Source: Oculina patagonica
Taxonomy: Eukaryota
Direction of reading: 5' to 3'
Assembly: GCF_052425735.1 (NCBI RefSeq)
Contig: NC_135759.1
Location: 15,376,001 to 15,440,000 of the forward strand
Length of the DNA: 64,000 nucleotides
Positions within the stretch are counted from its first letter, which is position 1; every line of letters begins with the position of its first letter. Positions 27,271 to 64,000 of the stretch are shown one piece after another. The position numbers were made by a program, and so were the translations under genes. The notes beneath the pieces were generated by a model. It was not told where the DNA came from, ran no database searches, and was given only the letters and a program-made list of their open reading frames with translations.

Positions 27271-27905
27271 GCTGACTACAATCATCACTTTCAGAGAGCG
27301 TGTCATTTCATGATTCACTATACCAAGTTTTACCTTTCCTAAAAGTTGTTGGAATAGTTAACGTAAAAAATGATTGCGATGAAAATGAGAGGTTTTTAAA
27401 GTTCTGCTAAACTAGTCCTATGACCTTTTCTGAAAAAAATTACAAATAAGGAAAAAAAATACCACAAACAACAGAGATCTTTGGAATTTCAGAGTGCTGG
27501 ATGGCCGTTGGCTCAGAAGAGCTCATCCGGCCTTTGTCGGTCTTGTTTTCAGTCCTGCAGGGTGTCTCAGTCACCCTCCTCACTAGCATAGCTAGTGGGG
27601 AAGCCGGTTTAGTCGCCGACTCGACCATGCGACAGGTAGTACTGGGTTACATGCTACCAGTAGCAACCATAGGCTGACATGTCGTAATAAGACAAATAGA
27701 GGAATTTGTCTTGTTGTAAATTTTTCCTGTCGTATAGGTAGTATTTTAAATCTGATCCTAATGAGATACAGCCAGCAAAAAATTGCAAATAACGTTGTAC
27801 CAAAAACAATCAAAGATTGACCTAGCGTTAATGATAGGGCAAATAGGGGTGCCATTGTGTATTGTAATTTTTCCGTCCGTCTTACGTCCTGCCATATATG
27901 CAGTA

Positions 27906-28639: not shown

Positions 28640-28849
28640 TATTTCAAATCTGATCCCTATAGGAAATGACCAGCCACCCCAAAACGCAAACAAAGTATAC
28701 TACCAGTAACAGCCACAGGCTGACCTAACATAATAAGGCAAATTAAGGGATTTGCCTTGTTGTTAATTTTTCTTCAGTCTTACAAGATGTATTTAAAACC
28801 CTCGCCTTCAATTCCCTTATAAAAAATGCCCTATACTTCAAAATAAGCT

Positions 28850-30283
28850 CTATTGCATTTCATGCTTGTAACCATTGTCCAGCTCTGACAGAGGAAATTT
28901 CATCGTGGCGAAGTAGTCCTCGCAAGTTTCGGCTCGTCGAATCATCTCATAACGATTGCAGGCAACGCGCAAAATTTCTGCGTGTCGCAATTTGGCATTG
29001 AAGTTGAACCCCATCGCTCGGCCGTACGCTCCTGCGCTGTGAAAGATACACAGATCACCAATTTCTGGATTCACGTTTAGAGTGCGGTCGACAGCAAGTT
29101 TATCGTAGTTGGCACAAAGGGAGCCGACGACGTCGAACATTCGATCTCTCTTATCACCTTTGTGGTTAGGACAAGCATAGGAAGGGTCGCTGACTACAGA
29201 CTTGTAATCGGGAAGGTTCTTTCGGACATCTTTAGGGGGAGACTGATCTTTGACGATGGTTATCTCGTAGTACATGCCAAACATGCCTGGAAGCATGAGG
29301 TCAGCCATTGAAGCATCAACGCCGAGGAAACGTTTGTACGTGTCTTTCATGTTTATAACACGTGAAACCAGCCAACCAAAGTCACCGGTCACTGCTCCTC
29401 CGCACTCGTACTTGATCTGTAGCGGATGAAGGTCTCGATGTGGCAAAACAATTTCTTCATACAAACATTTTACTTGGAAGCCGAGATCTTCCAAATCGAC
29501 AGGCACATCCTCAGGATGGTGGGTCACGCCGATGCCACCTCCCATGTTGACGAATTCAAGACATATTCCTGTCTCGATCTTAACTTCCACTGCCAATGCG
29601 AACATCATCCGAGCAGTCTCGGCAAGATCAGCGATATCCAGGGAATTGGACACTAGCATCGTGTGTGCTCCGAAACGCTTTACGCCATACTCCTTGCACT
29701 TCTTGTAGGCAGAAAACAGCTGGGCCTTTGTCAGGCCAAATTTTGCTTTAGCCGGGTTACCAACAAGCCTGTTGTATTTGACGTTTGTATGTGGACCAGG
29801 ATTGAAACGAAATGCAATCACTTCAGGCAAGACACCTCCCAATGCCTTCTTCAGGTTGTCAATTTGGGAATAGTCGTCCAAATTAATAATGGCACCCATG
29901 TCAAATGCCTTTCGGTAAGCCTCAAAAGGGGTGTTGTTTGAAGTAAACATGATATCTTCGCCTTTAATTCCCAGCCTTTCACATAGGATGAGCTCTTCAA
30001 GTGAACTGCAATCCATTCCCATGTCACACTCTTCGTGTAGCATCTTCAAAATAACCGGAGTAGGTGTTGCTTTGACTGCGAAGTGGTTCTTGAATGTCGA
30101 TCCGGTTAATGATCTCGTCCAGGCGAAGCCAGTATTAAAGTACTTGGCCCTATTCACAATGTTCACTTTGTCGTAGAGATAAAATGGGGTTGGGTACTGG
30201 GAGGCCACTTCTCTAAGTTCTACTTCGCTGCATGGTAACATTTTGTTACTTCTAACTTCATGGTCATCTCTGTAGTCTTCCAT
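28850..30283 (-). CDS. lysA: Diaminopimelate decarboxylase-like (LysA, fold-type III PLP) enzyme with altered specificity residues, copy 1
   Basis: Uninterrupted ORF with first ATG at 30283. Motifs YPTPFYLYD, HFAVKATP (PLP Lys), DCSSLEEL, FTSNNT, INLDD, FRFNPG, KFG, VNMGGGIGV, VVGSLC, GAYG and RRAETCEDYFAT closely follow Firmicutes/Streptococcus-type LysA. The symbol denotes homology only; the activity probably differs. Confidence 0.92.
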   Translation of the reverse strand: MEDYRDDHEVRSNKMLPCSEVELREVASQYPTPFYLYDKVNIVNRAKYFNTGFAWTRSLTGSTFKNHFAVKATPTPVILKMLHEECDMGMDCSSLEELILCERLGIKGEDIMFTSNNTPFEAYRKAFDMGAIINLDDYSQIDNLKKALGGVLPEVIAFRFNPGPHTNVKYNRLVGNPAKAKFGLTKAQLFSAYKKCKEYGVKRFGAHTMLVSNSLDIADLAETARMMFALAVEVKIETGICLEFVNMGGGIGVTHHPEDVPVDLEDLGFQVKCLYEEIVLPHRDLHPLQIKYECGGAVTGDFGWLVSRVINMKDTYKRFLGVDASMADLMLPGMFGMYYEITIVKDQSPPKDVRKNLPDYKSVVSDPSYACPNHKGDKRDRMFDVVGSLCANYDKLAVDRTLNVNPEIGDLCIFHSAGAYGRAMGFNFNAKLRHAEILRVACNRYEMIRRAETCEDYFATMKFPLSELDNGYKHEMQ

Positions 30284-30515
30284 CACGATCTAGGCTTCAA
30301 TCTGTGCGGATTAAAAACTGTGGACATAAAACCGTGTCAGGTATAGTGTCGCCAACTAACTAAGAAACGCGATTGGTATAGCTATAGCGGGGTGTCGGGA
30401 ATTCTGTAAAACAGGCTAGTGCCAATCACAGAACGATATAAGGGGTCTTACAGTGCTTTTACTGTAAGTTCCTGGTTTCATAATGGAAAAAATGCGCTTA
30501 TTTAAAGTGCTTTTA

Positions 30516-32220
30516 TTTAACAAATAAAGAAGCCTCGACTGTGCTCTGTTTTGTTGTAAAGCACGCAGGAAGCGGCTAGAGCACGAAAGAAGTGTAGGGT
30601 GAAATGCGAGCCGTAGGCGAGTGTTTCTCCCTACTTCTTGAGTGCTCTAGTCGCTTCCTAAGTGCTTTACAACAGAACAGAGCACAGTCGAGGCTTCTTT
30701 ATTTGTTTTATAATTAAGAAATTCATTAATTTCCCCACGAATTCGCGCAATTATTTTCAAAACAAACTTTTTTCAAACGAATAGCAGTGGCGTCAGCGTA
30801 CATCTGTACTCTGATAAAGTACGCAACAATTAGCCAATCACAAGACTTGTTAGAATGGTTAAAAGAATGTGATTGGTTGAATAAGACATCAGCTGTCAAC
30901 AGCTGTCAAACCATCAAGTTTGAAACCATCAAAGTTCAGAAATCCACAAGCTGAAAACGTCAAGTGGAATCCGAATTTTAACACGAGTCCTTGAAGTTCT
31001 TAGGACTTTTAGTACAAGACAGGATAGAAAAGTAGACTGTTTAGTGAAAACCGGCTGAATTCTGACCCATGAAAACTTGCACGTTGTTAACTTGACAACT
31101 AGAAAACAAACTGCTCAAAGCTTGTGGCTGGTACTTCACAAAATGCGGCCGTGCGGCGTGTTTCGCGAATCATTTACAACCATCGGATTCAAGGGAAAAA
31201 TTAAAGTTTTGCTGTGGTTGCTGTGGCCTTCCATTCATCGCACTGTTAAGGATATAGTCCAGGATTGTCTTCCTGAATTGCATTGGAGGTTTTTAGTCTG
31301 CTTCTGGAATGACATGAAGGTAAACTTGTGTTCGATGTTTTCTTTGTTTTCGCGCTTGTTCAATTTTTTCTAACTTTGCAGCAGCTTGTTTGAAGCTTGA
31401 AATTCAACCCTTTTTGCAATAAAAATTCCTAGGTTTAGGTGTCTCTGATAGCGTTGCGAAATCCAAGAAGCGATGACCTCGAGTAAAGTTCACCGTCTTT
31501 TGTTCGAGCTTCGGCGTAGAATTTACCCAAGTTGTTGTCTAGCTTCTTTGTTGGTCATTTTGTCAAGGCTTTTGGCAATTTTTCTTTCACGGCACCAAGC
31601 TGTTTTGAAAACGCCAGAAAAAAATTATTCAGTATGTGATAAGTCTGAGTTGTGTGTGTGTATTCGCTAGCTAATTTAGTTTTCTGTTTTTTGAATTGCT
31701 GTTTGTTTGTTTTGTTTTTTTACACGAAAATGTAGCTGTGCGTGTTTTATCTAAAATTCCGTACTTAAATAATGTGAAACTCATATTCAAAAACTCAGAT
31801 GGCCCATTTTGTACTATCTTTCGTGTTTTCCGTTTGTGCTTTCGTTATAATGTCTTCAATTTCGGCCTTGAGTTGTTTACAAATCTTTGGTTGGATGTTT
31901 TGTTGTTAAGCTTACTTTCCGGCTCGGTGTTTTTTTTCCCCCCGTAACTTGTACCGAAATTTCATTTCCTATCGCCGTGCAATTTGTGCTGTTAGGAACA
32001 GGACGTTTTAAATTAACGGACGTTAAAAGCTCGTTTTCATTCTCGTTTTTCAGGTCAAAGAAGATGTCAGGGTCAAGACAAAACCCGAGAAAGACGTTCG
32101 GGAATAGTGGTCGGCCATATTGGGTCGATGGCGTGACATTTCCTCCGTACATCTGGACTCTGATAAAGTACACTGTTTCAGCCAATCAGAGCGCGCGTTA
32201 TATGAAAACTTAATTATAAA
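30516..32220 (-). mobile_element. Decayed Crypton (tyrosine-recombinase DNA transposon)
   Basis: ~190-bp terminal hairpin at 30519-30706. The minus strand at 31545-31435 reads LDNNLGKFYAEARTKDGELYSRSSLLGFRNAI..HLN, matching the Crypton/DUF3504 (ZMYM/KCTD1-like) N-terminal motif, and is frameshifted around it. Confidence 0.7.
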
Positions 32221-32353
32221 TGTCTATATTCCAAGTTTTGTTTTCATCATTAATGTTTACACGCGCACTAATTTCAGTCCATTTCTGACGGTAGAATAGA
32301 TAACAACGTTTCGCAGCAGATTTGCTGGGGACTAAAGATGTTTCCCGTTTGTC

Positions 32354-34577
32354 TATCCCAGTCCCTAAACTCCTTCTTCCACGCGCCCTTTATAAGGGTT
32401 GAACCCAGGCGCGCGAAGAGAGAGTCCAGGATAACCTGCATGCGCATGCGCCAGTTTTCCCCCCCGAAATCGGGGGAAAAACCATATTTGGCAGCACGGT
32501 TGAAAAGGCGCGCGCACAGATGACGAGTTCAACTACGCAACCATGTTCTAAGCAGGAGGGCATTTTGCGTGCGCATGCGTCGATATGGGCTAGTGCGCAC
32601 GACAGAGAAGTTCTGCTATCGATTGTTTACATATTTTTCACAATTTATGGCCTAATTTTTAGCTCAAAATAAAAGGTATTTCAAGTTTTATTTGCTGTAT
32701 ACGATACTAAGAGTCCTTGCTTTATCTTCTGACAACAACAAGCATACTTTGGTGTCGGCGTGCCGTTTATCTGATCGACTTTGGCTATGTGTATTAAACA
32801 TTGCGCGTGGACAAAATGGCGACCGAATGTCGAGAACCTAAATACCTTGCCCATGTTTTTAATAGCCGGGAGATCTAAACGGACAAAGCGCTACGACTAC
32901 TTAGTACTAAAATATAAAACAGCAGTTTTAACTATACGATGTTATAATCAAGTATCCCGGGTTTGAGCAAATGATCATGATTTTGTTCAGATTTTTCATA
33001 AAACTGCAATTTCATCGTTCTCACGATGCGAAAATCTCAAAATCTAACCTTGATCTCCAGCGTCTAGCGATGATATATGGAGCCTGAAGTACTTGAACTA
33101 TCGTCTAATGCTGCGAAGGTAGCGTTAAAAAATGGTCTATTGTGGTAATTTTTAGCTTTCTTTAACGTACGTTCTCGCTGGTTTATTCTAACAGAGAAAC
33201 TATCGTTTGTGATTATTTCCTTAAACTTAAGCATTGGTCAAAATAACTTCACATTTCGATGTACCACAATTATTCCGTTGAACAAGAAAAGAATTTCTGA
33301 GATCGGTCTTAATTTTAAAGTGTAATGGTAATTCTTTGCTGGTGGACTATTTGTTTACATTTTACTATGTTAATTAGTACATTTTTGGCTCCTTTATCAA
33401 AATCTAGCCTTGATCACCAGTCAAAAAATAGCATGGAACGAACAAGCGATATATATATTTTTCAGAAACGTTCTAATAACTGCTGCATAAAATGTCTTAA
33501 GAAATAATTTTTAACCATAAACAATGTTATTTTCAATTTTTCATTCAACGTTTATTTCTTTAAGATTGATGTTCGTTCTGTTATATCGACTGTTTTACTT
33601 CTGTGTCGCCTAAATGTGATTTAAAGAACTGCAGTTTTTGTTCCAGGAAACCCTGTTTGCCAGTCGAGGGCAAGTTGGCTTTGCTTTAGAGTCATCAGTG
33701 AGCTGCATTATTATGTGCAGAACACCCAAACATGTCATTCCCCTCAGGGAAAACCCTTTCCTTGGTGGCCGTCCCTTTAGGCAAAAAATCTCCCGACAAG
33801 CTATAATATTGCTCGCACTCTGCCTGTATGACAGCAATTGATTTGATGTGAAGTTTTGATCCTAATATATCACACTCCAGCACACGAATAAATGTTTTCC
33901 CCTTTTACGGTCTGTTTGATTTTTGTCGGTGAAGGCTTTCCTACCTGTCCCACATATTTTCCCATTATTTGCAACAACGATCCCGAAGCAGGCAGGAAAA
34001 TCTGATTTATAAGAGCCTTGCCACACACAAAACACTTTTTCTTAGCGAAATTTACGTCTATATTAAATTATGTGACGATAAACAGTTTAAAAAACAAAGT
34101 TTGAATCTTCCGCGCCATTTTTATTCCCAAGATCACGCGGTCTTTGTACAGCGGTTGCACGCATGCGCCCGCAAAATGCCCTCCTGCTACCATGTTCTAA
34201 AGCAGGATCACCGGAAAAACTTTAAAAAAGCCTAGCTTTCCAGTCAGTGTCTATAAAAGCTAACGGCCAAAACACAAATCGCTATCTGTCAACTATTCCT
34301 TCCATTTTGTAGCTGTTTATGAATTGGTTTTGGATGCAATTTAGTACAGTTTTTTTCTTGCATTTATTCGCGCGCTTGGTCGCGTAGTTCAATTCGTCAT
34401 TTGATCGAGCAGTTTTAACCTAGCGCGCGCGTCCCAAGCAAGTGACGCCACACTCCTCGCTTCTGATTGGTTCGTTCTGAGCATGCGCATGCAAGTTATA
34501 CTGGACTCTCTTTCTCGCGCGCCTGGGTTCAACCCCTATAAAGGGCGCGCGTAAAAGAGAGTTACGGAACTGGACTA
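32354..34577. mobile_element. Academ-like non-autonomous DNA transposon with 9-bp TSD
   Basis: ~95-bp TIRs (..GGGTTGAACCCAGGCGCGCG..AGAGAGTCCAG..TGCATGCGCATGC), right end CTGGACTA, TSD CCGTTTGTC/CCGTTTATC. Confidence 0.8.
32550..34189. mobile_element. Second Academ-like element nested in the first
   Basis: TIR AGCAGGAGGGCATTTTGCGTGCGCATGCGT / ACGCATGCGCCCGCAAAATGCCCTCCTGCTA, with an exact 9-bp TSD CCATGTTCT. Confidence 0.8.
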
Positions 34578-35102
34578 CCGTTTATCCTATGTAAAGAGCC
34601 AGCCTCGTCCCCAGGGTCTTCTCTTTTTTCAAAATGGCGGCCGAAAACGGAGAAGACCCTGAGGACGAGATTGTGCGCACACTCCGTAAAGGAGAATTAT
34701 TCTCGGGTCTCCTCGTAACTCCTCGCGGGAACGTAATCCCGCCAAAATGCATTAATATAATTTATGAATTTGGTTTGGTTCGGCAAAAGCACGACGTTTG
34801 AACCGCTGCCGTGCCAGAGTCGTGTAGCAGAGCATGGCGTGTCGAACTAAATTGCTTTGCTGAACTCAATTCAAAAGTTTGATTCAGACGTCGTGCTTCT
34901 GCCGTGCTTTTGTCTTAATTCCTAAATTTAGTTTGGCACGGCAGAAGCACGACGTCTGAGCTAGGCCTAACTTGAGGAAGATTCTTTTACAAGGGAAAAT
35001 ATTGGTATTTAAAAAAAGAAGTTATATCACTGCACATTCATGTTTTCTTGAAGTGTTAACGGCAGCATTTTACTTCTAACTGAAAACTTCTAGTATACAG
35101 TA

Positions 35103-35503
35103 CAGAAAAAACCCGCGAGTAAGAATCTAGTTTTTTCGGTGAGCCTAAACAGGTTCTTACATAAATGGAAGTTAACACAAATTTAGGCTATTTAGGTTCT
35201 TAATGGGTTCTTATTTTTCTAAGGAAAAATTTATATTGTTGCAAATAGAGCTTTTAGTGATATTCAGCCTTTTATTTGTATAAAATTTGCATACCACACA
35301 AGTGTTTATGTAAAAATGAAGCGCTACAGTAAAGCCTTGTCCAAACTTTTTTTCCCAAAGTTAACATTTGTAATCAATTTTAGAAAATAAGAACCTGTTT
35401 TCAATTTTTAGGCTTAATAGGTTATTATAAAAATGGGTCTAATTTGCAAATTTTAGCCTAACAGGTTCTTAAAACTTAGGTTCTTACTCGCGGGTTTTTA
35501 CTG
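35103..35503. mobile_element. Tc1/mariner-type MITE
   Basis: TIR CAGAAAAAACCCGCGAGTAAGAA / TTCTTACTCGCGGGTTTTTACTG with TA flanks. Confidence 0.8.
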
Positions 35504-35555
35504 TATATATTAGTAAAATTGCGAATCCGTAAGTTAAATTTTTGAGGTGTGATAA

Positions 35556-35793
35556 GGGACGGACCATTATTTTTCTTGGAGGGGGGGGGGATGAAAAATT
35601 TTCCTCTGCAAACTTTTTTTTTTAGTTTATGCACCTCTGCAAACATTTGTTTTCGAAATTCTTACTATTTTTTGTTATACATATCGTGTTTGCAAACAAT
35701 TTATTTTGTCTTTCCAGGCCCTGCAAACAATTTTTTTCAATATTTTTCAGCCCCCCTCCCCCCCCCCCCCAAAAAAAAATAATGGTCCGTCCC
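35556..35793. mobile_element. PIF/Harbinger-type MITE
   Basis: TIR GGGACGGACCATTATTTTT / AAAAATAATGGTCCGTCCC with TAA/TAG flanks. Confidence 0.8.
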
Positions 35794-36366
35794 TAGTAGT
35801 CTTTTGCCTCAGAAAGATTTGTTTTGAAGGGCTTTTCAAAAATTCTTTTTTTAGCAAAAGTTGCAGAGGATATAGTTCATTTGAGGTCTGTTTGAGATAT
35901 GTTAGGTAAGTAGGCGGGTCATGAAAAGGACAACAAGCGTTATGTGCACATGCGACAAACAGACGCGCCCACGATTTGTTTGATAAGGTATAACAGAGCC
36001 GTGCTGGCAATATTTTACACTTGAAAGCATTGAATGGAACGATGTTAAGTTCTAGAAGAGCGATTGAGCTCGAAAACAAAGAAAGCAACGGTATTGTCTG
36101 CCATATTTTCTTTCTCTTCTTTCTCTTCAGAGTTACGTCATGAGAATGATGTCAGCATTTTCGAAAGCCTCCGTTTTCGCCGTCCTCACTTATGTGATAA
36201 CACTCCGTTTTCAAATGTTTCCACTTTGAACAGAATTTTCAAAAGTATGCGTTTTTGATGAAAACGATGAACGTTTTCGATCATTGAAGTGTGGACGGTA
36301 GGCGAAAACGCATTAGTGTGGAAAATTGAAAAGAAAAAATCCCTTTCAGTTTAAAGAATAATTTAT

Positions 36367-36870
36367 TCTTCTTGTATTTATATCACATCCACTAGCGGGT
36401 TCTGTTACTTGTACTGAAGATGGATCTTAAAGTTTCATCCGAGACTTGTTAACACTAAAAAAGTCGTGACCATCTTGAAAATCATCTCCTTTCTGTTGGT
36501 TTTAAGGAAATTTGATAAATTAATAGACCTTTTTTAGCTTTGTTCGTTTGCTGTCCCATTTCAGGCCATTTGAGATTTTTTTTTTCAAATTAAAAAAATC
36601 AATCGGGTGAAAATGCATAAATAATTCTTTGATAGATAAGGAAAAAACTCTCTAGAGAACATCGCACGATCTGAAATGGACAATTTGCATACAAACTGAA
36701 AAATTGTTTTCCGGCGCAATGATCTTGATTTAATTTTGCCTATTTTTTAGTATTTGCTTGCAATGAACTGCGTTTGAAACCCTGTGTCCTGGCTTAATAG
36801 AGAAGGAAGCATGGAGTTGGTTGAACACTTAAGGGGAGAAAATGGTATTTCATGTTTATTCCGATGTTAT
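36367..36870. repeat. Older duplication: matches 55408-55930
   Basis: TTCTTGTATTTATATCACATCCACTAGCGGGTTCTGTTACTTGTACTGAAGATGGATCTT and the following ~450 bp recur at 55408. Also, 55930-57170 holds diverged pieces of the tandem unit and 57260-57860 matches 51690-52640. Confidence 0.85.
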
Positions 36871-37094
36871 ATTTTTTTTTTAAATTAAAAAAAAAAACAA
36901 TCCACGTGAAAATGTGCTCCGTGTGGCAATTTGAATATTGTTCAATTCTAAATTATATTAAAATTCAATTATAAGTAAGGGCGTAATGTTTTCTCCCCTT
37001 TCTGAACTTTCCGCATAAGTATCACAGCAAGATTGTGTTTTTTCTGTTAAATCAATGAAGTTCCCTGAGCTTTTAAGGTATAGTGCTTCGCTTT

Positions 37095-37280
37095 TTTCTT
37101 CGGTTGTCCCAAATTCAACTCCTCCACGCTTTTGTAAATAGCCAACTGGTCAGCCTCCTGCCAGTTGGGGTTTTAACAAGTTTATGTTCGATTTTCAATA
37201 TTTGTTTATCTATTTACAGTATCCACAATTAGCACAGTAGTGCTAAATACATTGACACTTAAATAAAGTGATTTTTTTTT
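37095..37280 (+). mobile_element. 5'-truncated SINE/LINE tail present only in array unit 1
   Basis: TTGTAAATAGCCAACTGGTCAGCCTCCTGCCAGTTGGG..AAATAAAG inserted in a T-run. Units 2-4 show the empty site CGCTTTTGGCAGCAG. Confidence 0.65.
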
Positions 37281-38474
37281 GGCAGCAGAATAACGGATAT
37301 GTCACAAAATAGAAAAAGTATCTCTCCACCAAATTACCGTCTGCTGAATAATTACGTCTGGTACCAGAGGGCAAAATGGGAAGAAAATTGTCCAAAATGA
37401 ATATAGTTAATTGTCTGATTTTTTCTACAAATAACTTGAGTGAATTTGATTCCAGCCATTTTACAGTTGCAATTGGATTTTACTAAAATGATATACCAAA
37501 GTTTGTCGATAAAAGAAACTTTTTTTCCATAAGAGTGACGTTCCCATTTTTAAACAAGTATATGGACATTAATATGTATACAAATTAATGCAAAAAGAAA
37601 CAGACATATTCTGACTTTACGTGGCAGCTAGTTTAGCTAAATGCCCTGAATGGCTTCGCCGCTCGCGCGTGTGACCCAAGCCCTACCCTGTTCGCAGGCT
37701 ATTAGTAATATTTTTGTAAATGACTGGTTCAGTTACTATGTTAACCCACAAGCTCACAACCTCTGTTTGTGGTCACGTCTCGCCAAGATATTTTTTTAAA
37801 AGTTTCTTCACTTATTGAACAGAACAGAATTGAATTCATTTATTATGCGTGAAAAAGCAAAACTTCTTGCCTGTGAAAAGCATTTTCCAGCCTTTTCCTT
37901 TTGTGGCAATTTACTCTATACTAGCGAAAAATGTACGGCTGAAATCAAAATGAGGTTAATGGCCAGCAAAAGTAGCGTTCGTAAAGTATTCCAACCGAAA
38001 ATGATAACAAGAAAACATTGCGCGCAATGCAAGAAGTGCTCGTAAGCGGATTCAGTAAGTAATAAGCGCGCCATTGTTATCCCCAACGGTTACTTCAAGT
38101 AAAATCTACCGCCCTTTAAGCATGCGCCTTCATCAATGTAACCGTCCTTCTTATTTTGTTGATACATATATACTTTGGAGATAATTGTTTAAGGGCGCCT
38201 TCGGTAGATGTATTTCAAACGACATTGCTCCAAATTATTGTCAATACAGTTATTTCTTTTAGCATTCAGCAACTGCCATATAGAACCTTTTTTTCTGTCG
38301 AAACCAGCGAGCGGCTATTTATACGTAAGTGGCATCGGTACGATTAGATTTTATTTCTTAAACGCATTCGTAAGATGAAGTATTCCGAGAGAGGAGAAAG
38401 ATACCGCTTTGAAATGCTCCACCACAGTCAAGTATTGGTGAGCTGGCACAGAAAACGCATTATTTTCTAGGCTA

Positions 38475-38980
38475 CCATATTTACTCGAATAAGCACCGCG
38501 GCGCTTATTTAATTTTTTGCGCCACAAGTGCGGCCCTTTTATCGAGGGCGTCGCTTAATTGAGGGCAACGCTAATTTAAAATTTAGACGCCGCAAAGAAT
38601 GAATAAAAATAAAATAAAATAAAAAACGAAACTTCTATAGTAGATAAAAGAAGAATCTTTTGATTGTCAGGATTCGTGCTTTACGGAAGAGAGTAGTTGC
38701 GCTTGCTGTCCCGAAAAAGCTCACGGCCTTCACAATGTTAACCGAACTTCGTATTGTTAGAATTTTTGATAGGCAAGCGGTACAACATAACTTTGAACTG
38801 CGAAACATCGCTTATGATGAAAAGGAATTTCCAAGGCTGTTTCAGAGCTTCTTTGTAGTGCTATTTTTGTTTATACGGAATTCCTCAAGTAAGCGCCGCA
38901 TCGGGACTGCGGCGCTTATTAACTTTTTTGTCCCGAATGCGGCGCTTATTCGGGGGCGGCGATTATTCGAGTAAATACGG
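38475..38980. mobile_element. TA-TSD MITE (CCGTATTTACTCGAATAA TIR) in unit 1
   Basis: CCATATTTACTCGAATAAGC / TTATTCGAGTAAATACGG. The empty site GGCTAGTCAC is seen in units 2 and 3. Confidence 0.85.
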
Positions 38981-41900
38981 AAGTCACTTGTGAATTAAAT
39001 TAATTTCTTACTAACAGAATCCAAAATATAAAGCTAACATAACGCCTTTCCTTTGTTTATAGATATTTGCTTGCCAGCCGGACAACTTTTGGGGGTCTGG
39101 GCTATCTTTGTGGGAGATATGTTATGGAGTTTAATTGTTTTTTGTTTGTTTTTTTTTTTTGCGAAATAAAAAGAGGAGGCGTATTTTGGAGAGGTACTTG
39201 CCATTCTGTTCGGTAATCCACTTGCTTGACGTTGGTCCGCAGAATCGAGGATCAATTTGAACGGTCTACAAACTGATACAGCTTCCTATTCTATTGAAAG
39301 TTCCGTCGAACGAGTGTTACTAAGCAGCCGATGGCACTGGTGGGATATGAACGCTAGACTGTAAACACAATTTCATGGCTAATTATTCCGCAGATAAGAT
39401 AGGAGGTCTGCGTGCAAAACGGTGTATCAATTTCGCATCCATGACCTGGCGCTTTAAATATTCACAAGCTCGTTAAACCCTTAAAACGGCGACATCAGTC
39501 TATATGTATCCATGCTCACTATTTGTAAATGAATACTGGCATTATTTCTCGTAAGATATCTTGGAATAAATGTACCATTTTGGTCTATAAATACATTGCA
39601 GTGAATTTGATTGTATAAGTTTTAAGAAGTGACTTCTTTTTTGCTTACTATATAAACGCCGCTTGTTATGTTATACCTCCTTCTGTGACGTACGTTTACA
39701 GTTATACACGAGTCCTGTATCACGATTCAGAAGGGAGAGAGTTGATAAAACCTGACTTTAGGAAAGAAAAGAATATTGCGTGTTTATTCCTAGTTTAAAT
39801 TTCCAAAAGTAAACAATTATTTCTGAAGATACGTCTATAAACATTACGAATGATTTTTAAAAACGTGCACTCAGTACTTTTTTTTTTCAGTTGAATCATA
39901 TTTGTGTTCGCTGTAAACAAATAACCTACATAAGTTGTATGGGATTCAATCGTATTACTTCAAATCTAACTTAGAATTCAACGTTGGAAAGTTCGAATTC
40001 TGAAATATTTTGAGAAGTTGTGCACTGGCCATAAGATTGCTGCTTATACAAAACGTTTAATCCTGTACATTTACATTTAAAAATGATGATATAGAGTCAT
40101 CGAAACGTTATGTAACTTCCTGTTAAAATGACTCGCGATGGTCTTCAAGAAACGGTCTGATGTCTGCGAACAGTGCTTTCAAAATCTCCCGCAATAGAGG
40201 CTACCAACGTTATGTTGGGAGTAATATATAATCGAAGTAATAATAAAACCTTAATTTAAGTGTCAAGCTAAAGCAGCAGTAAAAGAACCCCTGAATTGGG
40301 GCACTAACAATTAAAATAAAAAAGTAATTTAAACCCACCTAAAATACTAACATTAAGATGCTAAGATTCGCTCAAATGTTGTAACATTGCGGCGTTTCAG
40401 ACCGCGTTTGCATTAAACTAATAAGATGTCGTAGATGTGAAGAAGAAAAAATTCGTACCTTTGCGGCTTCAATCCAAATAAACGCAAACAACAAATCGTA
40501 ATCCTGCAAAACAATACGGGAAAATAAATATAAATTATGAGGTAAATGACAGAATAGTGCGAAAGACAATGTCTTTACGTGTCTTGTTTACTCACCTCGT
40601 CTAGCACAAATACCAAAGTGACCAAAGTTGGTCGTAATAGCATTCTATTGAAGTGCTACGTGTGGCAATTTGAATATTGTTCAATTCTAAATTTTATTAA
40701 AATTCAATTATAAGTAAGGGCGTATTGTTTTCTCCCCTTTCTAAACTTCCCGCATGAGTATCACAGCAAGATTGTGTCATTTCTGTTAAATCAATGAAGT
40801 TTCCTGAGCTTTTAAGGTATAGTGCTCCGCTTTTGGCAGCAGAATAACGGATATGTCACAAAATAGAAAAAGTATCTCTCCACCAAATTACCGTCTGCTG
40901 AATAATTACGTCTGGTACAAGAGGGCAAAATGGGAAGAAAATTGTCCAAAATGAATATAATTAATTTTCTGCTTTTTTCGACAAATAACTTGAGTGAATT
41001 TGATTCCAGCCATTTTACAGTTGCAATTGGATTTTGCTAAAATGATATACCAAAGTTTGTCGATAAAAGAAACTTTTTTCCCATAAGAATGACGTTCCCA
41101 TTTTTAAACAAGTATATGGACATTAATATGTATACAAATAAATGCAAAAAGAAACAGACATAATCTGACTTTATGTGGCAGCAAGCGTAGCTAAATGGCC
41201 TGAATGGCTTCGCCGCTCGCGCGTGTGATCCAAGCCCTACCCTGTTCGCAGGCTATTAGTAATATTTTTGTAAATGACTGGTTCAGTTACTATGTTAACC
41301 CACAAGCTCACAACCTCTGTTTGTGGTCATGGCTCGCCAAGATATTTTTTTAAAAGTTTCTTCACTTATTGAACAGAACAGAATTGAATTCATTTATTAT
41401 GCGTGAAAAAGCCAAGCTTCTTGCCCGTAAAAAGCATTTTCCAGCCTTTTCCTTTTGTGGCAATTCACTCTATACTAGCGAAAGTTGTGCGGCTGAAATC
41501 AAAATGAGGTTAATGGCCAGCAAAAGTAGCGTTCGTAAAGTATTCCAACCGAAAATGATAACAAGAAAACATTGCGCGCAATGCAAGAAGTGCTCGTAAG
41601 CGGATTCAGTAAGTAATAAGAGCGTCATTGTTATCCCTACCGCCCTTTAAGCATTCGCCTTCATCAATGTTACCGTCCTTTTTATTTTGTTGATACATAC
41701 TTTGGCGATAATTGTTTAAGGGCGCCTTCGGTAGAAGTATTTCAAACGACATTGCTCCAAATTATTGTCAATACAGTTATTTCTTTTAGCATTCAGCAAC
41801 TTCCATAGAGAAACTTTTTTTCTGTCGAAACCAGCGAGCGGTTATTTATACGTAAGTGGCATCGGTATAATTAGATTTTATTTCTTAAACGCATTCGTAA

Positions 41901-44369
41901 GATGAAGTATTCCGAGAGAGGAGAAAGATACCGCTTTGAAATGCTCCACCACAGTCAAGTGGTGGCACAGAAAACGCATTATTTTCTAGGCTAGTCACTT
42001 GTGAATTAAATTAATTTCTTACTAACAGAATCCAAAATATAAAGCTAACATAACGCCTTTCCTTTGTTTATAGATATTTGCTTGCCAGCCGGACAACTTT
42101 TTGGGGTCTGGGCTATCTTTGTGGGAGATATGTTATGGAGTTTAATTGGTTTTTGTTTTTTTTTTTTTTTTTTTTTTTTTTTTACGAAATAAAAAAAGGA
42201 GGCGTATTTTGGAGAGGGACTTGCCATTCTGTTCGGTAATCCACTTGCTTGACGTTGGTCCGCAGAATCGAGGATTAATTTGAACGGTCTACAAACTGAT
42301 ACAGCTTCCTATTCTATTGAAAGTTCCGTCGAGCGAGTGTTACTAAGCAGCCGATGGCACTGGTGGGATATGAACGCTAGACTGTAAACACAATTTCATG
42401 GCTAATTATTCCGCAGATAAGAGAGAAGGTCTGTGTGCAAAACGGTGTATCAATTTCGCATCCATGACCTGGCGCTTTAAATATTCACAAGCTCGTTAAA
42501 CCCTTAAAACGGCGACATCAGTCTATATGTATCCATGCTCACTATTTGTCAATGTATAATAACATTAGAGAGATTAAGCATGACATTATACGACAAACGG
42601 CAAACGCGAACTTGCCTTTCGTTTTGATACATTTTGACCGAATTCTAAAATTTCTACCTTATAAAAATAGGGGAAAAATCCCACAGTCATGATTGTTTAA
42701 AGGATCAATTTGAACGGTCTACAAATTGATACAGTTTCTTATTCTTTTGAAAGTTCCGACGACTGAGTGTTACTAAGCAGCCGATGGCATTGGTGGGATA
42801 TGAACGCTAAACCGTTAACGCAATTTTATGGCGAATTATTCCGCAGATAAGAGGGGAGGAGCAGCAGTAAAAGAACCCCTGAATTGGGGCACTAACAATT
42901 AAAATAAAAAAGTAATTTAAACCCACCTAAAATACTAACATTAAGATGCTAAGATTCGCTCAAATGTTGTAACATTGCGGCGTTTCAGACCGAGTTTGCA
43001 TTAAACTAATAAGATGTCGTAGATGTGAAGATGAAGAAATTCGTACCTTTGCGGCTTCAATCCAAATAAACGCAAACAAGAAATCGTAATCCTGCAAAAC
43101 AATACGGAAAAATAAATATAAATCATGAGGTAAATCACAGAACAGTGCGAAAGACAATGTCTTTACGTGTCTTGTTTACTCGCCTCGTCTAGCACAAATA
43201 CCAAAGTGACCAAAGTTGGTCGTAATTGCATTCTATTGAATTGCTCCGCGTGGCTATTTGAATATTGTTCAATTCTAAATTTTATTAAAATTCAATTATA
43301 AGTAAGGGCGTAATGTTTTCTCCCCTTTCTGAACTTCCCGCATGAGTATCACAGCGAGATTTTGTTATTTCTGTTAAATCAATGAAGTCTCCTGAGCTTT
43401 TAAGGTATAGTGCTCCGCTTTTGGCAGCAGAATAACGGATATGTCACAAAATAGAAAAAGTATCTCTCCACCAAATTACCGTCTGCTGAATAATTACGTC
43501 TGGTACAAGAGGGCAAAATGGGAAGAAAATTGTCCAAAATGAATATAATTAATTGTCTGCTTTTTTCGACAAATAACTTGAGTGAATTTGATTCCAGCCA
43601 TTTTACAGTTGCAATTGGATTTTGCTAAAATGATATACCAAAGTTTGTCGATAAAAGAAACTTTTTTCCCATAAGAATGACGTTCCCATTTTTAAAGAAG
43701 TATATGGACATTAATATGTATACAAATAAATGCAAAAAGAAACAGACATAATCTGACTTTACGTGGCAGCAAGCGTAGCTAAATGGCCTGAATGGCTTCG
43801 CCGCTCGCGCGTGTGATCCAAGCCCTACCCTGTTCGCAGGCTATTAGTAATATTTTTGTAAATGACTGGTTCAGTTACTATGTTAACCCACAAGCTCACA
43901 ACCTCTGTTTGTGGTCACGTCTCGCCAAGATATTTTTTTAAAAGTTTCTTCACTTATTGAACAGAACAGAATTGAATTCATTTATTATGCGTGAAAAAGC
44001 CAAGCTTCTTGCCCGTAAAAAGCATTTTCCAGCCTTTTCCTTTTGTGGCAATTCACTCTATACTAGCGAAAGTTGTGCGGCTGAAATCAAAATGAGGTTA
44101 ATGGCCAGCAAAAGTAGCGTTCGTAAAGTATTCCAACCGAAAATGATAACAAGAAAACATTACGCGCAATGCAAGAAGTGCTCGTAAGCGGATTCAGTAA
44201 GTAATAAGCGCGTCATTGTTATCCCTACCGCCCTTTAAGCATTCGCCTTCATCAATGTTACCGTCCTTTTTATTTTGTTGATACATACTTTGGCGATAAT
44301 TGTTTAAGGGCGCCTTCGGTAGAAGTATTTCAAACGACATTGCTCCAAATTATTGTCAATACAGTTATT

Positions 44370-44751
44370 AGGCCTACTCTGGGACCCAAAGTCGCCGTAA
44401 CTTTGGGCGACTTAAGGCGACTTTAGGCGATTTTAGCTTATTTTGTCCAAAATTACGAGCGATTTTGGGCAATTTTGGGCGACTTTAGGCGACTTTGGGC
44501 GATTTTGAGCGACTTTAGGCAATTTTAGGTGACCTTTTAGGCAATTTTAGGTGACCGACCTAAGTACAGTTGTGGTATACATGTACATGGAATCATCATG
44601 GTACACCATAAAGCATTGTTACAGAAAATATCTATACTATTTAAAGCGACTTTGAGCAACTTTGGGCGACTTTAGGCGACTTTGGGCGACTTTAGGCGAT
44701 TTTGAGCGATTTTGGGCGACTTTGGGCGATTTTGGGTCCCAGAGTAGGCCT
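44370..44751. mobile_element. MITE with 10-bp subterminal repeats, unit 3 only
   Basis: Perfect TIR AGGCCTACTCTGGGACCCAAA / TTTGGGTCCCAGAGTAGGCCT, duplicated GTTATT, and TTTGGGCGAC repeats. The other units show the empty site. Confidence 0.9.
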
Positions 44752-47621: not shown

Positions 47622-48143
47622 CCATATTTAATCGAATAAGCGCCGCCGCGCTTATTTAATTTTTCGCGCCACAAGTGCGGCGCTTATTCGAGGGCGGCGC
47701 TTTATTGAGGGCAACGCTAATTTAAAATTTGGACGCCGCAAAGAATCGAATCTAAACGAAACTTCTATATTAGATAAAAGAAGAATCTTTTGATTGTCAG
47801 GATTCGTACTTTACGGAAGAGAGTAGTTGCGCTTGCTGTCCCGAAAAAGCTCACGGCCTTCACAATGTTAACAGAACTACGTATTGTTAGAATTTTTGAT
47901 AGACAAGCGGTAAAACATAACTTTGAACTGCGAAACATCGCTTATGATGAAAAGGAATTTCCAAGGCTGTTTCAGAGCTTCTTTGTAGTGCTATTTTTGT
48001 TTATACGGAATTCCTCGAGTAAGCGCCCCATCGGGACTGCGGCGCTTATTCGGGGGCGGCGCTTATTAACATTTTTGTCCCGAATGCGGCGCTTATTCGA
48101 GGCGGCGCTTATTCGGGGGCGGCGCTTATTCGAGTAAATACGG
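47622..48143. mobile_element. Same TA-TSD MITE in unit 4
   Basis: Same site and sequence as 38475-38980, with TA on both sides and GGCGCTTATT subterminal repeats. Confidence 0.85.
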
Positions 48144-49330
48144 TAGTCACTTGTGAATTAAATTAATTTCTTACTAACAGAATCCAAAATATAAAGCTAA
48201 CATAACGCCTTTCCTTTGTTTATAGATATTTGCTTGCCAGCCGGACAACTTTTGGGGGTCTGGGCTATCTTTGTGGGAGATATGTTATGGAGTTTAATTG
48301 TTTTTTTTTTGTTTTGTTTTTTGCGAAATTAAAAAAAGGAGGCGTATTTTGGAGAGGGACTTGCCATTCTGTTCGGTAATCCACTTGCTTGACGTTGGTC
48401 CGCAGAATCGAGGATCAATTTGAACGGTCTACAAACTGATACAGCTTCCTATTCTATTGAAAGTTCCGTCGAGCGAGTGTTACTAAGCAGCCGATGGCAC
48501 TGGTGGGATATGAACGCTAGACTGTAAACACAATTTCATGGCTAATTATTCCGCAGATAAGAGAGGAGGTCTGCGTGCAAAACGGTGTATCAATTTCGCA
48601 TCCATGACCTGGCGCTTTAAATATTCACAAGCTCGTTAAACCCTTAAAACGGCGACATCAGGCTATATGTATCCATGCTCACTATTTGTAAATGAATACT
48701 GGCATTATTTCTCGTAAGATATCTTGGAATAAATGTACCATTTTGGTCTATAAATACATTGCAGTGAATTTGATTGTATAAGTTTTCAGAAGTGACTTCT
48801 TTTTTGCTTACTATATAAACGCCGCTTGTTATGTTATACCTCCTTCTGTGACGTACGTTTACAGTTATCACGAGTCCTGTATCACGAGTCAGAAGGGGGA
48901 GAGTTGATAAAACACTTTAGGAAAGAAAAGAATATTGCGTGTTTATTCCTAGTTTAAATTTCCAAAAGTAAACGATTATTTCTGAAGATACGTCTAACAT
49001 TGCGAATGATTTTTAAAAACGTGCACTCAGTATTTTTTTTTTCAGTTGAATCATATTTGTGTTCGCTGTAAACAAATAACCTACATAAGTTGTATGGGAT
49101 TCAATCGTATTACTTCAAATCTAACTTAGAATTCAACGTTGGAAAGTTCGAATTCTGAAATAATTTGGGAAGTTGTGCACTGGCCATAAGATTGCTGCTT
49201 ATATAAAACGTTTAATCCTGTACATTTTAATTTAAAAATGATGATATAGAGTCATTGAAACGTTATGTAACTTCCTGTTAAAATGACTCGCGATGGTCTT
49301 CAAGAAACGGACTGATGTCTGCGAACAGTG

Positions 49331-60912: not shown

Positions 60913-62299
60913 ATCCCAAAGTTTGATTTTTTCATATTATTCGCCCTTTTAATTAAGTCGCCTTCAGGCGATTAAAGTAATCGATAATATTCGATTACGA
61001 TTGGTTTTATGGGATCTAAATTCAAATAGCAATACAGAAAACTAAATTACAAAACCCCTCTAAAGCCTAATGCCAAAATAATTAAACAATAAATGAAAAG
61101 AAAAAAGCAATTATTTCAAGGTTTCCTTTTTCATCAATAACTATTAGATATTAACATATATCTAATACTTATAGAACATAATTTTAGGGTAGTTAACTGA
61201 TTCCGTAGAGTTTATACTAGTTTATATTAGCTACAATATAAATATTATATTTAAAGCTACTCTAAAATTCGAGTGAAAATAAAGTCTATGTATGTATGTA
61301 TGTATACTCCACAAGGTTCAAGCAGAATCTCTCAGTGACTGTTAGCTACTGTTATGGGGTGAACGTTTTTCAGGATAGTCCCAGTAAATACTTCACGGAC
61401 ACTTTTACTTGGTTGTTTCATTGGTGTGGTCGTAATCCGGCAGCTGATGTTTCGAACTTGAACTGGTTAACTTGAATCTTCCATTCAGTGATGCACCGAA
61501 ATGGCTACATAATCATTAACAAGAATGAACTGCTTTTAGTTGCCAACTTGCTATAGCAACTACCGTCCATATGAACGGTTTCTAAGAAAATGGAATCCAT
61601 GTCTTGTGAACAAAATGTGTGTTTCACGAGTTCAACTTCAGGAAGATAACCAAGCATTTTTAACTACCTTAATAAACTACCATTTCTAAAAACAATTACA
61701 AATGAGGAAAAAAATATATTGGAAACAACAAGGATGCTAGATGGCCATTGGCTCCAAAGACCTCATCCGCCCTTTGTCTGGTCTTGATTTTAGTCCTTCA
61801 GGGTGTCTCAGCCACCCTCCTCACTAGCATGGCTAGTGGGGGAGCCGGTTAATCGCCGACCACTCGACCATGCGGCAGGTAGTACTGGGTTACATAGTAC
61901 CAGTAGCAGCCATAAGCTGACCTGACGTAATAAGACAGATAAAGGTATTTGTTTTATTGTAGGGTTTAGACCGATTTAACTTCCTGCCAGTCTTAAATGC
62001 AGTTTTTCAAATCTGATCCTTACAGGAAATGCCCAGCAAAAAATAACAGAAAACGCTGTGCCAGTAACAGCCAAAGGCTAACCTGACGTAAATGATAAGA
62101 TAAATAAAGGGATTTGTCTTATTGTAAATTTTATCCCAATTAAACTTCCTGCCATACATGAAGTATTTCAAATCTGACTCTTATAGGAAATGTCCAGCAC
62201 AAATAACAAGCATAACTATCCATGCCATGATGGACATAATATCACTTAATGAGAAATTATTGTTATTACATAGATAGTTGTGATTTAAAATAAGCTTTA

Positions 62300-63730
62300 T
62301 TACATTCCATCCATGCAACCATTGCACAGTTCTGACTGAGGAAATTTCATCGTCGCGAAGTAATCGTCGCAAGTTTCGGCTCGACGGATCACCTCAAACT
62401 GACTGTAGGCAACACGCAAAATTTCTGCGTGTCGCAAAGACGCGTTAAAGTTGAAATCCTGACAGCGGCCATACGCTCCTGCGTTGTGAAAGATGCACAA
62501 ATCACCAATTCCTGGAATTACATTCAGCACCCGATCGGAAGCAAACTTATCAAAATTCGTACAAAGGGAACCAACGACGTCGAACATTCTCATCCCCTTG
62601 TCTTTCTCGTGATCCGGACTGTCATAGGTAGGGTCGCTGACTACAGACTTGTGATCAGGAAGATTCATTTGCACGTGGTTCGGAGGAGACTGATCTTTGA
62701 CGATGGTAATCTCGTGGTACTGGCCAAATACGCCTGGAAGAAGGAGGTCGACCATCACAGCATCGACGCCGAGGAAACGTTTGTATGTGTCTTTCATGTT
62801 TATAACACGTGAAACCAGCCAGCCAAAATCACCGGTCATCGCTGCTCCGCATTCATACTTGATCTGCAGGGGATGAAGATCTCGATGTGGCAAAACGATT
62901 TCTTCATACAAACATTTCACTCGGAAGCCTAAATCTTCTAAGTCAACAGGCGTATCTTCAGGATGGTAAGGCACGCCGATGCCACCTCCCATGTTAACGA
63001 ATTCAACACGGATTCCTGTCTCGGTCTTAATTTCCACAGCCAATGTGAACATCATCCGAGCAGTCTCGGCAAGATCCGCGATATCCAGGGAATTGGACAC
63101 TAGCATCGTGTGCACTCCAAAACGTTTAACACCAAATTCCTTGCTCTTCTTGTAGGCGGAAAACAGCTGGGATTTTGTCATGCCAAACTTCGATTCAGCA
63201 GGGTTGCCAATGTACTCGTTGTATGTAATGTTGTGACCCGGACCTGGATTGAAGCGAAATGCAATCACCTCGGGCATGACACCTCCTAACGCCTTTTTCA
63301 GGTTATCAATTTGGGAATAATCGTCCAAATTAATAATGGCACCCATGTCAAATGCCTTTCGGTAAGCCTCAAAAGGGGTGTTGTTTGAAGTAAACATGAT
63401 ATCTTCGCCTTTGATTCCCAGCCTTTCACAGAGAATGAGCTCTTCAAGTGAACTGCAATCCATTCCCATGTCACACTCCTCGTGTAGCATCTTCAAAATA
63501 ATTGCAGTAGGTGTTGCCTTGACTGCGAAGTGGTTTTTGAAAGTCGATCCGGTTAATGATCTCGTCCAAGCAAAGCTAGCATTGAGATACTTGGCCCTGT
63601 TCTCTAGTCCGACTTTGTCGTAGAGATAAAATGGAGTTGGGTACTGGGAGGCCAAACCTCTAAGTTCTACTTCGCTGCATGGTAACATTTTGTTACTTAA
63701 AACTGCGTCGTCATCTCTGTGGTCTTCCAT
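62300..63730 (-). CDS. lysA: Diaminopimelate decarboxylase-like (LysA, fold-type III PLP) enzyme with altered specificity residues, copy 2
   Basis: 476-aa intact ORF, collinear without gaps with copy 1 and with the same motifs (HFAVKATP, VNMGGGIGV, VVGSLC, GAYG). Confidence 0.92.
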   Translation of the reverse strand: MEDHRDDDAVLSNKMLPCSEVELRGLASQYPTPFYLYDKVGLENRAKYLNASFAWTRSLTGSTFKNHFAVKATPTAIILKMLHEECDMGMDCSSLEELILCERLGIKGEDIMFTSNNTPFEAYRKAFDMGAIINLDDYSQIDNLKKALGGVMPEVIAFRFNPGPGHNITYNEYIGNPAESKFGMTKSQLFSAYKKSKEFGVKRFGVHTMLVSNSLDIADLAETARMMFTLAVEIKTETGIRVEFVNMGGGIGVPYHPEDTPVDLEDLGFRVKCLYEEIVLPHRDLHPLQIKYECGAAMTGDFGWLVSRVINMKDTYKRFLGVDAVMVDLLLPGVFGQYHEITIVKDQSPPNHVQMNLPDHKSVVSDPTYDSPDHEKDKGMRMFDVVGSLCTNFDKFASDRVLNVIPGIGDLCIFHNAGAYGRCQDFNFNASLRHAEILRVAYSQFEVIRRAETCDDYFATMKFPQSELCNGCMDGM

Positions 63731-64000
63731 CTAGGCTTCAATCTGTGTGGATCCTGAACTGTAAACATAAAGCCACGTCGTCAGATAAAGTGCCGGCAAA
63801 CTATTTGGATTTAAGGGGGCCCAAACCTATTAATTTACGTGATAGTTGCATTTTTGAATCACGCTTTTTGGTAGGTACGATTTCACCGATTTCTTAGAAT
63901 TTTTGCGTCCTGAATGAAAAATGTTCGAATTTACGGAAAATGGCATTCGATTTTCAGTCGGAATAAAATCTTTTGAGATTTGAACATATTTTCAAAATCT

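Follow-up and report, generated by a model that had tools for sequence, protein, structure and literature searches.

Two LysA-derived genes of the coral Oculina patagonica lack the distal diaminopimelate-binding residues and probably encode decarboxylases of another amino acid

A 64,000-nucleotide stretch of the genome of the stony coral Oculina patagonica (the window; NCBI RefSeq assembly GCF_052425735.1, contig NC_135759.1, positions 15,376,001 to 15,440,000 of the forward strand) carries two tandem paralogues 33 kb apart, here called W1 and W2, that descend from LysA, the diaminopimelate decarboxylase (DAPDC) of lysine biosynthesis. It is proposed that both probably encode active pyridoxal 5'-phosphate (PLP)-dependent decarboxylases for which meso-diaminopimelate (DAP) is no longer a substrate and which use another amino acid. 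The two genes are as follows.

28850..30283, minus strand: W1, a predicted LysA-derived fold-type III PLP decarboxylase; intronless coding sequence of 477 amino acids with its ATG at 30283
62300..63730, minus strand: W2, paralogue of W1; intronless coding sequence of 476 amino acids, 83% identical to W1 at the protein level in a gap-free alignment

Neither is a chance reading frame, because each runs for about 477 codons in DNA of roughly 40% GC and matches DAPDC structures at E = 6e-31. W1 was first listed as an open reading frame of 478 amino acids (28850-30286) from a GTG at 30286; since an in-frame TAG lies two codons upstream, the ATG one codon downstream of that GTG, at 30283, is taken as the true start. 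In W2 a TAG immediately precedes the ATG, giving the 476-residue product.

Both proteins match the Pfam domains Orn_Arg_deC_N (PF02784, E = 5e-22 and 3e-24) and Orn_DAP_Arg_deC (PF00278), and their best matches among solved structures are DAPDCs, with 2p3e giving the E-value quoted above. An AlphaFold2 model of W1 built from a 100-sequence alignment (predicted local distance difference test score 93.3, predicted TM-score 0.92) retrieves the DAPDC structures 1tuf and 1twi at the top of a Foldseek search, followed by DokD and BtrK, with TM values of 0.78-0.91. Fold-type III enzymes are recognized by a Schiff-base Lys, a stacking His, a Gly-rich phosphate loop, a Glu directed to PLP N1 and a Cys on a loop from the partner subunit. 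W1 and W2 possess all of these (Lys72, His208, Gly249-251, Glu294 and Cys391) within the motifs FAVKAT, GAHTML/GVHTML, NMGGGIG, KYECG and GSLC, and also keep GAYG with Tyr421. Judged by domains, fold and PLP/catalytic residues, both are predicted to be PLP-dependent decarboxylases of fold-type III (alanine racemase fold, group IV). The Schiff-base lysine codon lies as follows.

30071..30073, minus strand: PLP Schiff-base Lys72 codon of FAVKA in W1 (W2 equivalent at 63518-63520), invariant in 23 coral sequences

In the same 23 sequences His208, Gly249-251, Glu294 and Cys295 are likewise invariant, and within the fold-type III set only the loop Cys varies in the coral family, being kept as GSxC in 23 of 28 sequences, W1 and W2 among them. 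The ancestral His421 of GAHG is Tyr in all 28, and His312 to Asn and Tyr429 to Phe are fixed or nearly so in corals. In five full-length coral paralogues (P0006, P0007, P0012, P0018 and P0022) the GSxC Cys is replaced by Pro, Gly or Met, while the PLP residues are all retained. Cys variants of related decarboxylases suggest by analogy that these paralogues may catalyze a different reaction; as suggested by the DokD C387S structure (9cpz), this might be a decarboxylation-coupled transamination that releases aldehydes.

Among profile models the two proteins come closest to LysA. The LysA equivalog model TIGR01048 is their best NCBIfam match, yet W1 scores 207.4 and W2 202.9 bits, below its cut-off of 297.9 bits. 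The DokD model NF052544 gives 74.1 and 73.2 bits against a cut-off of 700, NF041039 gives 37 bits against 500, and scores on the DokD, FslC and NspC profiles all fall far under the respective cut-offs. On these grounds W1 and W2 appear to be members of the LysA clade by descent that fall short of LysA both in equivalog score and in the distal substrate contacts described below.

LysA grips the far end of meso-DAP with a quartet of residues drawn from three motifs: E(P/C)GR supplies an Arg, RPxxY an Arg and a Tyr, and CE(S) a Glu. We take these to be the residues that contact the distal end of DAP in the structures 1hkv and 2qgh. The structural literature on their roles is summarized in 10.1101/2020.10.01.322594. 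In the HMMER alignment to 2p3e and 1twi, W1 places ECGGA opposite EPGRS, DLMLPGMF opposite DLIRPSIY and GSLCANYD opposite GPICETGD, with GAYG opposite GAYG. The motifs of W1 and W2 at these positions are ECGGA/ECGAA, LMLPGMF/LLLPGVF and CANYD/CTNFD, so that Arg/Arg/Tyr/Glu reads G/L/F/A in W1 and A/L/F/T in W2. The replaced positions are the following.

29396..29398, minus strand: W1 Gly297 at the Arg position of E(P/C)GR (W2 Ala296 at 62843-62845)
29279..29293, minus strand: W1 Leu332 to Phe336 at the Arg and Tyr of RPxxY, in the specificity helix (W2 Leu331 to Phe335 at 62726-62740)
29105..29116, minus strand: W1 Cys391-Ala392-Asn393-Tyr394, on the loop that enters the partner subunit's active site in DAPDCs (W2 Cys390-Thr391-Asn392-Phe393 at 62552-62563); the loop retains its catalytic Cys but no longer has the CE Glu, which is absent from all coral members

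Because all four distal contacts are lost, a role of W1 and W2 in lysine biosynthesis is very unlikely. An earlier note on this DNA, made from its letters alone, had drawn the same conclusion from two intact LysA-derived reading frames of an animal genome with every distal specificity residue exchanged; the frames, each motif it quoted, its assignment of residues to LysA contacts and the exchange in both copies all agree with the alignment to solved DAPDCs, and the LysA descent and animal location are borne out by the phylogeny and genomic context given below.

The loss extends through the whole coral family. When the four positions were read from an alignment of 352 relatives, RRYE was found in all 266 non-coral relatives that aligned cleanly, including two from a marine eukaryote (P0032 and P0033), and in zero coral sequences. 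More than 20 combinations occupy the quartet in corals, for example GLFA (W1), ALFT (W2), TGFI (Pocillopora), ALCM (Porites), RLYM (Oculina) and RRVT. At column 297, Arg is present in at least 97% of 88 LysA-clade sequences, and nine different residues occur across the 28 coral sequences. Those 88 sequences define 116 columns of at least 97% conservation, of which 75 keep their residue in at least 90% of corals; the most variable ones cluster at 297, 330-341, 390-393 and 425-427, which are substrate-lining segments. Mean entropy in corals is 2.11 bits at the four preselected sites versus 0.47 bits over the 116 columns (permutation p = 8.5e-5). In the coral family position 332 is often Leu and position 336 often aromatic; an aromatic residue at 394 is confined to the W1/W2 clade and one other sequence and is not family-wide. 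The hydrophobic or aromatic substrate, perhaps a D-amino acid, that the earlier note put forward would fit the prevalent Leu332 and Phe/Tyr336, and the products may, as it suggested, be biogenic amines or natural-product precursors. Five charged residues (H68, K196, K292, R319 and R440 in the 478-residue numbering of W1) are invariant in corals and rare or absent in the LysA clade, which makes them candidates for new functional contacts.

Selection acts differently on the gene as a whole and on the old contact sites. Between W1 and W2, dN is 0.10 and dS 0.37-0.48, giving an omega (dN/dS) of 0.21-0.29 with no 80-codon window above 0.31. For 16 intact coral coding sequences under GY94+F3X4+G4 the whole-gene omega is 0.20. 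Omega for codon subsets chosen beforehand, fitted on the same tree, is given below, first with a free rate and then with the synonymous rate tied to the gene.

Four DAP-contact codons: 0.56 (free), 1.03 (tied)
25 codons of the three specificity segments: 0.36 (free), 0.51 (tied)
All other codons: 0.20 (free), 0.17 (tied)

For the four contact codons omega is indistinguishable from 1 in a low-power test (2ΔlnL = 2.3). The pattern points to release of the old contact sites from constraint and, within that low power, lends no support to positive selection. The comparison between the copies that the earlier note had called for thus falls on the side of purifying selection, not near 1. Its picture of a remodelled pocket survives in part: the contacts are indeed replaced in both copies, but the loss is not peculiar to them, having occurred in more than 20 ways across the stony-coral family, and the near-neutral codons look like released constraint and not like a pocket built anew and then conserved.

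The closest database proteins are from corals (70-89% identity), and the named close matches are all from stony corals, namely O. patagonica, Pocillopora damicornis, P. meandrina, P. verrucosa, Porites lobata and P. harrisoni; a protein near-identical to W2, P0004, occurs in NCBI assembly GCA_044670265.1. Coral copies sit on contigs of 1-38 Mb in several corals, and a Pocillopora damicornis copy lies downstream of a NACHT-LRR gene. The next matches are hundreds of bacterial proteins annotated as LysA, at 47-50% identity (Desulfitobacterium, Dehalobacter, Daviesbacteria, Spirochaeta, Planctomycetes). Of these bacterial relatives, P0087 and P0051 pass the TIGR01048 cut-off with 309.8 and 310.6 bits and another narrowly misses it with 291.9 bits. 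Upstream of P0087, the Desulfitobacterium dehalogenans homologue, and on the same strand, lies a lysine riboswitch (116.7 bits, E = 1e-31).

7701-7875 of locus L001, plus strand: RF00168 lysine riboswitch, ending 125 nt before the D. dehalogenans start codon

This riboswitch indicates that the ancestral clade is a real lysine-biosynthesis LysA; a search upstream of the Spirochaeta lutea homologue (L025) returned none. Two bacterial LysA-clade proteins have unusual architectures: P0035 (596 amino acids) contains an internal repeat of about 180 residues, possibly a duplication or an assembly artefact, and P0056 (533 amino acids) has an N-terminal PF10084 domain fused to LysA.

In a maximum-likelihood tree built from 75 proteins, the 28 coral sequences all fall into a single clade (support 100), sister to P0032 and P0033 (support 99); together these join the LysA of Neospora caninum (P0121) and two further representatives (support 97), within bacterial LysA. 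P0032 is an AT-rich polyadenylated transcript from a Joint Genome Institute sample; a second homologue search and the ESM Atlas returned bacterial neighbours only for P0032 and P0033. An insertion of about 45 amino acids before the GSLC loop is common to the corals and these two proteins, the latter retaining RRYE. The tree thus shows a single horizontal acquisition of a genuine LysA, whose nearest lineage is eukaryotic (the marine eukaryote, then an apicomplexan-type lineage) and nested among bacterial LysA. Table 1 of Bhattacharya et al. 2016 (eLife, PMC4878875) lists Seriatopora_29443, "diaminopimelate decarboxylase", as anthozoan horizontal gene transfer (HGT) no. 41, with chlorophyll-c-containing algae as its source. 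The W1/W2 family is almost certainly the same, as judged from the named relatives compared here, which come from Pocillopora, Porites and Oculina; the transfer was therefore already published in 2016 and is not new here. After acquisition this nuclear gene family has grown and decayed by tandem duplication and pseudogenization. One coral contig carries five members of a single 90% cluster, and coral metagenome contigs hold decayed copies: L012/L013 (1501-2864) are frameshifted near residues 120-147, L014 (39-1397) has many stops, and L015 and L016 are fragments, the latter 6.5 kb from L012 on contig OMLO01000102.1.

We propose that a LysA which entered the coral lineage by horizontal transfer would have found itself in a host without DAP supply; we know of no DAP pathway in an animal that could feed it. 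The enzyme kept its fold, its dimer-type active-site loops and Lys72, His208, Gly249-251, Glu294 and Tyr421 (with Cys391 in W1 and W2), while the Arg/Arg/Tyr/Glu clamp on the distal L-centre of meso-DAP was lost. An external aldimine would presumably still form, and an alpha-amino acid would be decarboxylated to an amine. Without those charged contacts to make, the substrate side chain would be either neutral, small or hydrophobic, or a bulkier one anchored at another place.

Several observations weigh against this proposal. Near-neutral evolution of the contact sites would also fit a protein whose substrate pocket no longer matters, such as a regulator, and five of the 28 coral paralogues are without the GSxC Cys. 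The coral-specific H68, K292, R319 and R440 could serve as new charged contacts. The Phaeodactylum tricornutum enzyme PtLYSA has Thr for the EPGR Arg and still works as a DAPDC (10.1101/2020.10.01.322594), so that loss of a single contact is not decisive. As for transcription, W1 has zero reads in the true polyA RNA run X21, a small library, and among runs labelled RNA-Seq none is listed as holding W2.

A stronger version of the proposal holds that diversifying selection has tuned the pocket of each paralogue to its own substrate, possibly with action on D-amino acids like that of LysA and DokD. More than 20 residue combinations at four sites, the concentration of the most variable LysA-invariant columns in the substrate-lining segments 297, 330-341 and 390-393, plus 425-427, the tandem expansion and the frequent Leu332 and aromatic 336 are all as this would predict; the four-site omega, however, does not exceed 1 under either treatment and the 25 segment codons stay at 0.36-0.51, although in a test of low power. 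We regard such tuning as rather unlikely, and the same holds for the wider idea that corals turned the acquired LysA into an expanding decarboxylase family whose paralogues act on different neutral or hydrophobic, possibly D-, amino acids.

If instead the proteins were catalytically dead or nearly so and had a binding or regulatory role, as the antizyme inhibitor has among ornithine decarboxylase homologues, the near-neutral pocket positions and the loss of the catalytic Cys in some paralogues would be readily accommodated. Such pseudoenzymes would not be expected to preserve the PLP Lys, the stacking His, the Glu to PLP N1, the Gly loop and the phosphate-binding Tyr invariantly across 23-28 coral sequences, nor a whole-gene omega of 0.2, and W1 and W2 both have the Cys; we therefore consider this improbable.

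It may also be asked whether W1 and W2 are still meso-DAP decarboxylases that salvage DAP from bacterial cell walls to supply the host with lysine, the distal end being held by other residues. Their descent from a true LysA, the intact catalytic set, the substitutes for the EPGR Arg in PtLYSA and the coral-invariant K292, R319, R440 and H68 would be compatible with this. Four distal contacts are gone rather than one, though, the quartet varies among paralogues and drifts near-neutrally, which is unexpected of a retained DAP clamp, and both copies score under the LysA equivalog cut-off, so that we give DAP salvage very little weight. That the genes come from an associated microbe or alga through contamination or misassembly, as their bacterial/algal type and the intronless coding part might suggest, is rejected: the two copies have diverged from each other and are embedded in AT-rich animal DNA that also contains a retroelement, homologues stand beside animal genes on Mb-scale coral scaffolds, and the clade is monophyletic and restricted to corals.

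Use of another amino acid by active enzymes is the preferred reading. The DNA around W1 and W2 has 34-45% GC, and the window has zero N runs. DNA identity between the copies is 84.5% across the coding part and about 70 nt upstream, and patches of the flanks reach 69-75% only. One such non-coding patch shows that the duplicated segment is larger than the gene.

27423..27905, strand not given: non-coding flank, 74% identical to 61679-62165 by sequence comparison within the window

The pair appears to be an old segmental duplication whose coding part is better preserved than its surroundings. A tblastn search within the 64-kb window found no third copy. Signs of a biosynthetic cluster around W1 and W2 were also sought; the long reading frames of the window gave retroelement domains only, and in other corals neither extra copies nor obvious partner genes were found within 10 kb of the homologues. 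A 127-amino-acid reading frame antisense inside W2 (62429-62812, plus strand) is most likely a chance frame in a conserved coding region. Two further features of the window are listed below.

9200-12828, minus strand: Ty3/gypsy-type retroelement pol, as two adjacent long reading frames with integrase (rve), reverse transcriptase and RNase H domains
62296..62301, minus strand: AATAAA, a possible polyadenylation signal overlapping the W2 stop, from sequence only

About 30 nt upstream of the ATG of both genes a pyrimidine-rich tract ends in CAG, its final G at 30318 and 63759, and comparable acceptor-like motifs occur upstream at other coral loci. These are candidate acceptors of an intron in the 5' untranslated region (5'-UTR) and, like the retroelement, count in favour of a location in the animal genome.

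30318..30332, minus strand: putative 5'-UTR intron acceptor of W1, TTTTATGTCCACAG, 35 nt upstream of the ATG
63759..63773, minus strand: equivalent putative acceptor of W2, CTTTATGTTTACAG, the motif being kept in both copies

In a Logan contig of run X1 the match to the window ends at 30319 and is followed by 28 unlike letters, and coverage in run X3 is confined to 28794-30354. Runs X1, X2 and X3 are only guessed to be RNA, with flat coverage that may come from DNA, and X1 and X2 also cover the flanks; use of the acceptor upstream of W1 is suggestive only. The Pocillopora orthologue is found on many contigs of 2-5 kb from public runs, and the gene model of 2016 carries a Seriatopora identifier; neither counts as evidence for expression of W1 or W2.

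The label "diaminopimelate decarboxylase", carried in databases and in HGT lists, would on this analysis be wrong for the whole coral family, and lysine synthesis should not be read from annotation alone in coral genomes. The family offers a clean natural example of an enzyme that was transferred to an animal, parted with its former substrate and has nevertheless been retained, with purifying selection acting in each of the two major coral lineages. As a target of about 477 amino acids, soluble and with no targeting peptide evident, it could reveal amine metabolism in reef-building corals. If new specificities are confirmed, the amine or aldehyde products may serve in signalling, in defence or in the handling of microbial D-amino acids, and the activity would be animal-encoded and without counterpart in other metazoans. 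Apart from the 2016 table (PMC4878875), the searchable literature yielded nothing about what the coral gene does, and the family-wide loss of the quartet, the riboswitch-backed ancestry in a true LysA, the quartet-bearing eukaryotic sister and the selection pattern were not found there.

Among known systems, LysA (EC 4.1.1.20; TIGR01048; 1twi, 2p3e, 2qgh, 1knw, 1hkv, 6n2a) is by phylogeny the direct ancestor of W1 and W2. They share its two-domain alanine-racemase-type fold (Foldseek TM as above) and its PLP Lys, His, Gly loop, Glu, Cys and Tyr; they differ from it in replacing the whole quartet, in scoring 207/203 against 297.9 bits and in carrying the insertion of about 45 amino acids before GSLC. 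As with HGT no. 41 (PMC4878875), the window proteins belong to anthozoans, clustering with Pocillopora, Porites and Oculina, and the algal source named there agrees with the eukaryotic sister groups found here, whereas that study gives only the name and does not address the lost residues, the expansion or the selection. PtLYSA (7jpj) is likewise a bacterial-derived eukaryotic LysA; Thr replaces its EPGR Arg, and it carries an insertion close to the active site. This enzyme, an essential one with proven DAPDC activity, retains the RPxxY Arg and Tyr along with the CES Glu (10.1101/2020.10.01.322594), whereas the coral proteins lose all four contacts; with only about 22% identity to W1 when the folds are aligned, PtLYSA falls in a separate LysA lineage. 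DokD, a D-ornithine/D-lysine decarboxylase (6n2h, 8d88; NF052544), is LysA-like with a new substrate and acts on the D-centre. Together with BtrK (7ru7), FigC/FslC (7kh2) and SbnH (6knh), it provides precedent for LysA-like enzymes adopting new substrates when these same specificity segments change. These enzymes are bacterial, work in known pathways and are only distantly similar to W1 and W2, whereas the coral clade has an independent origin in another LysA lineage.

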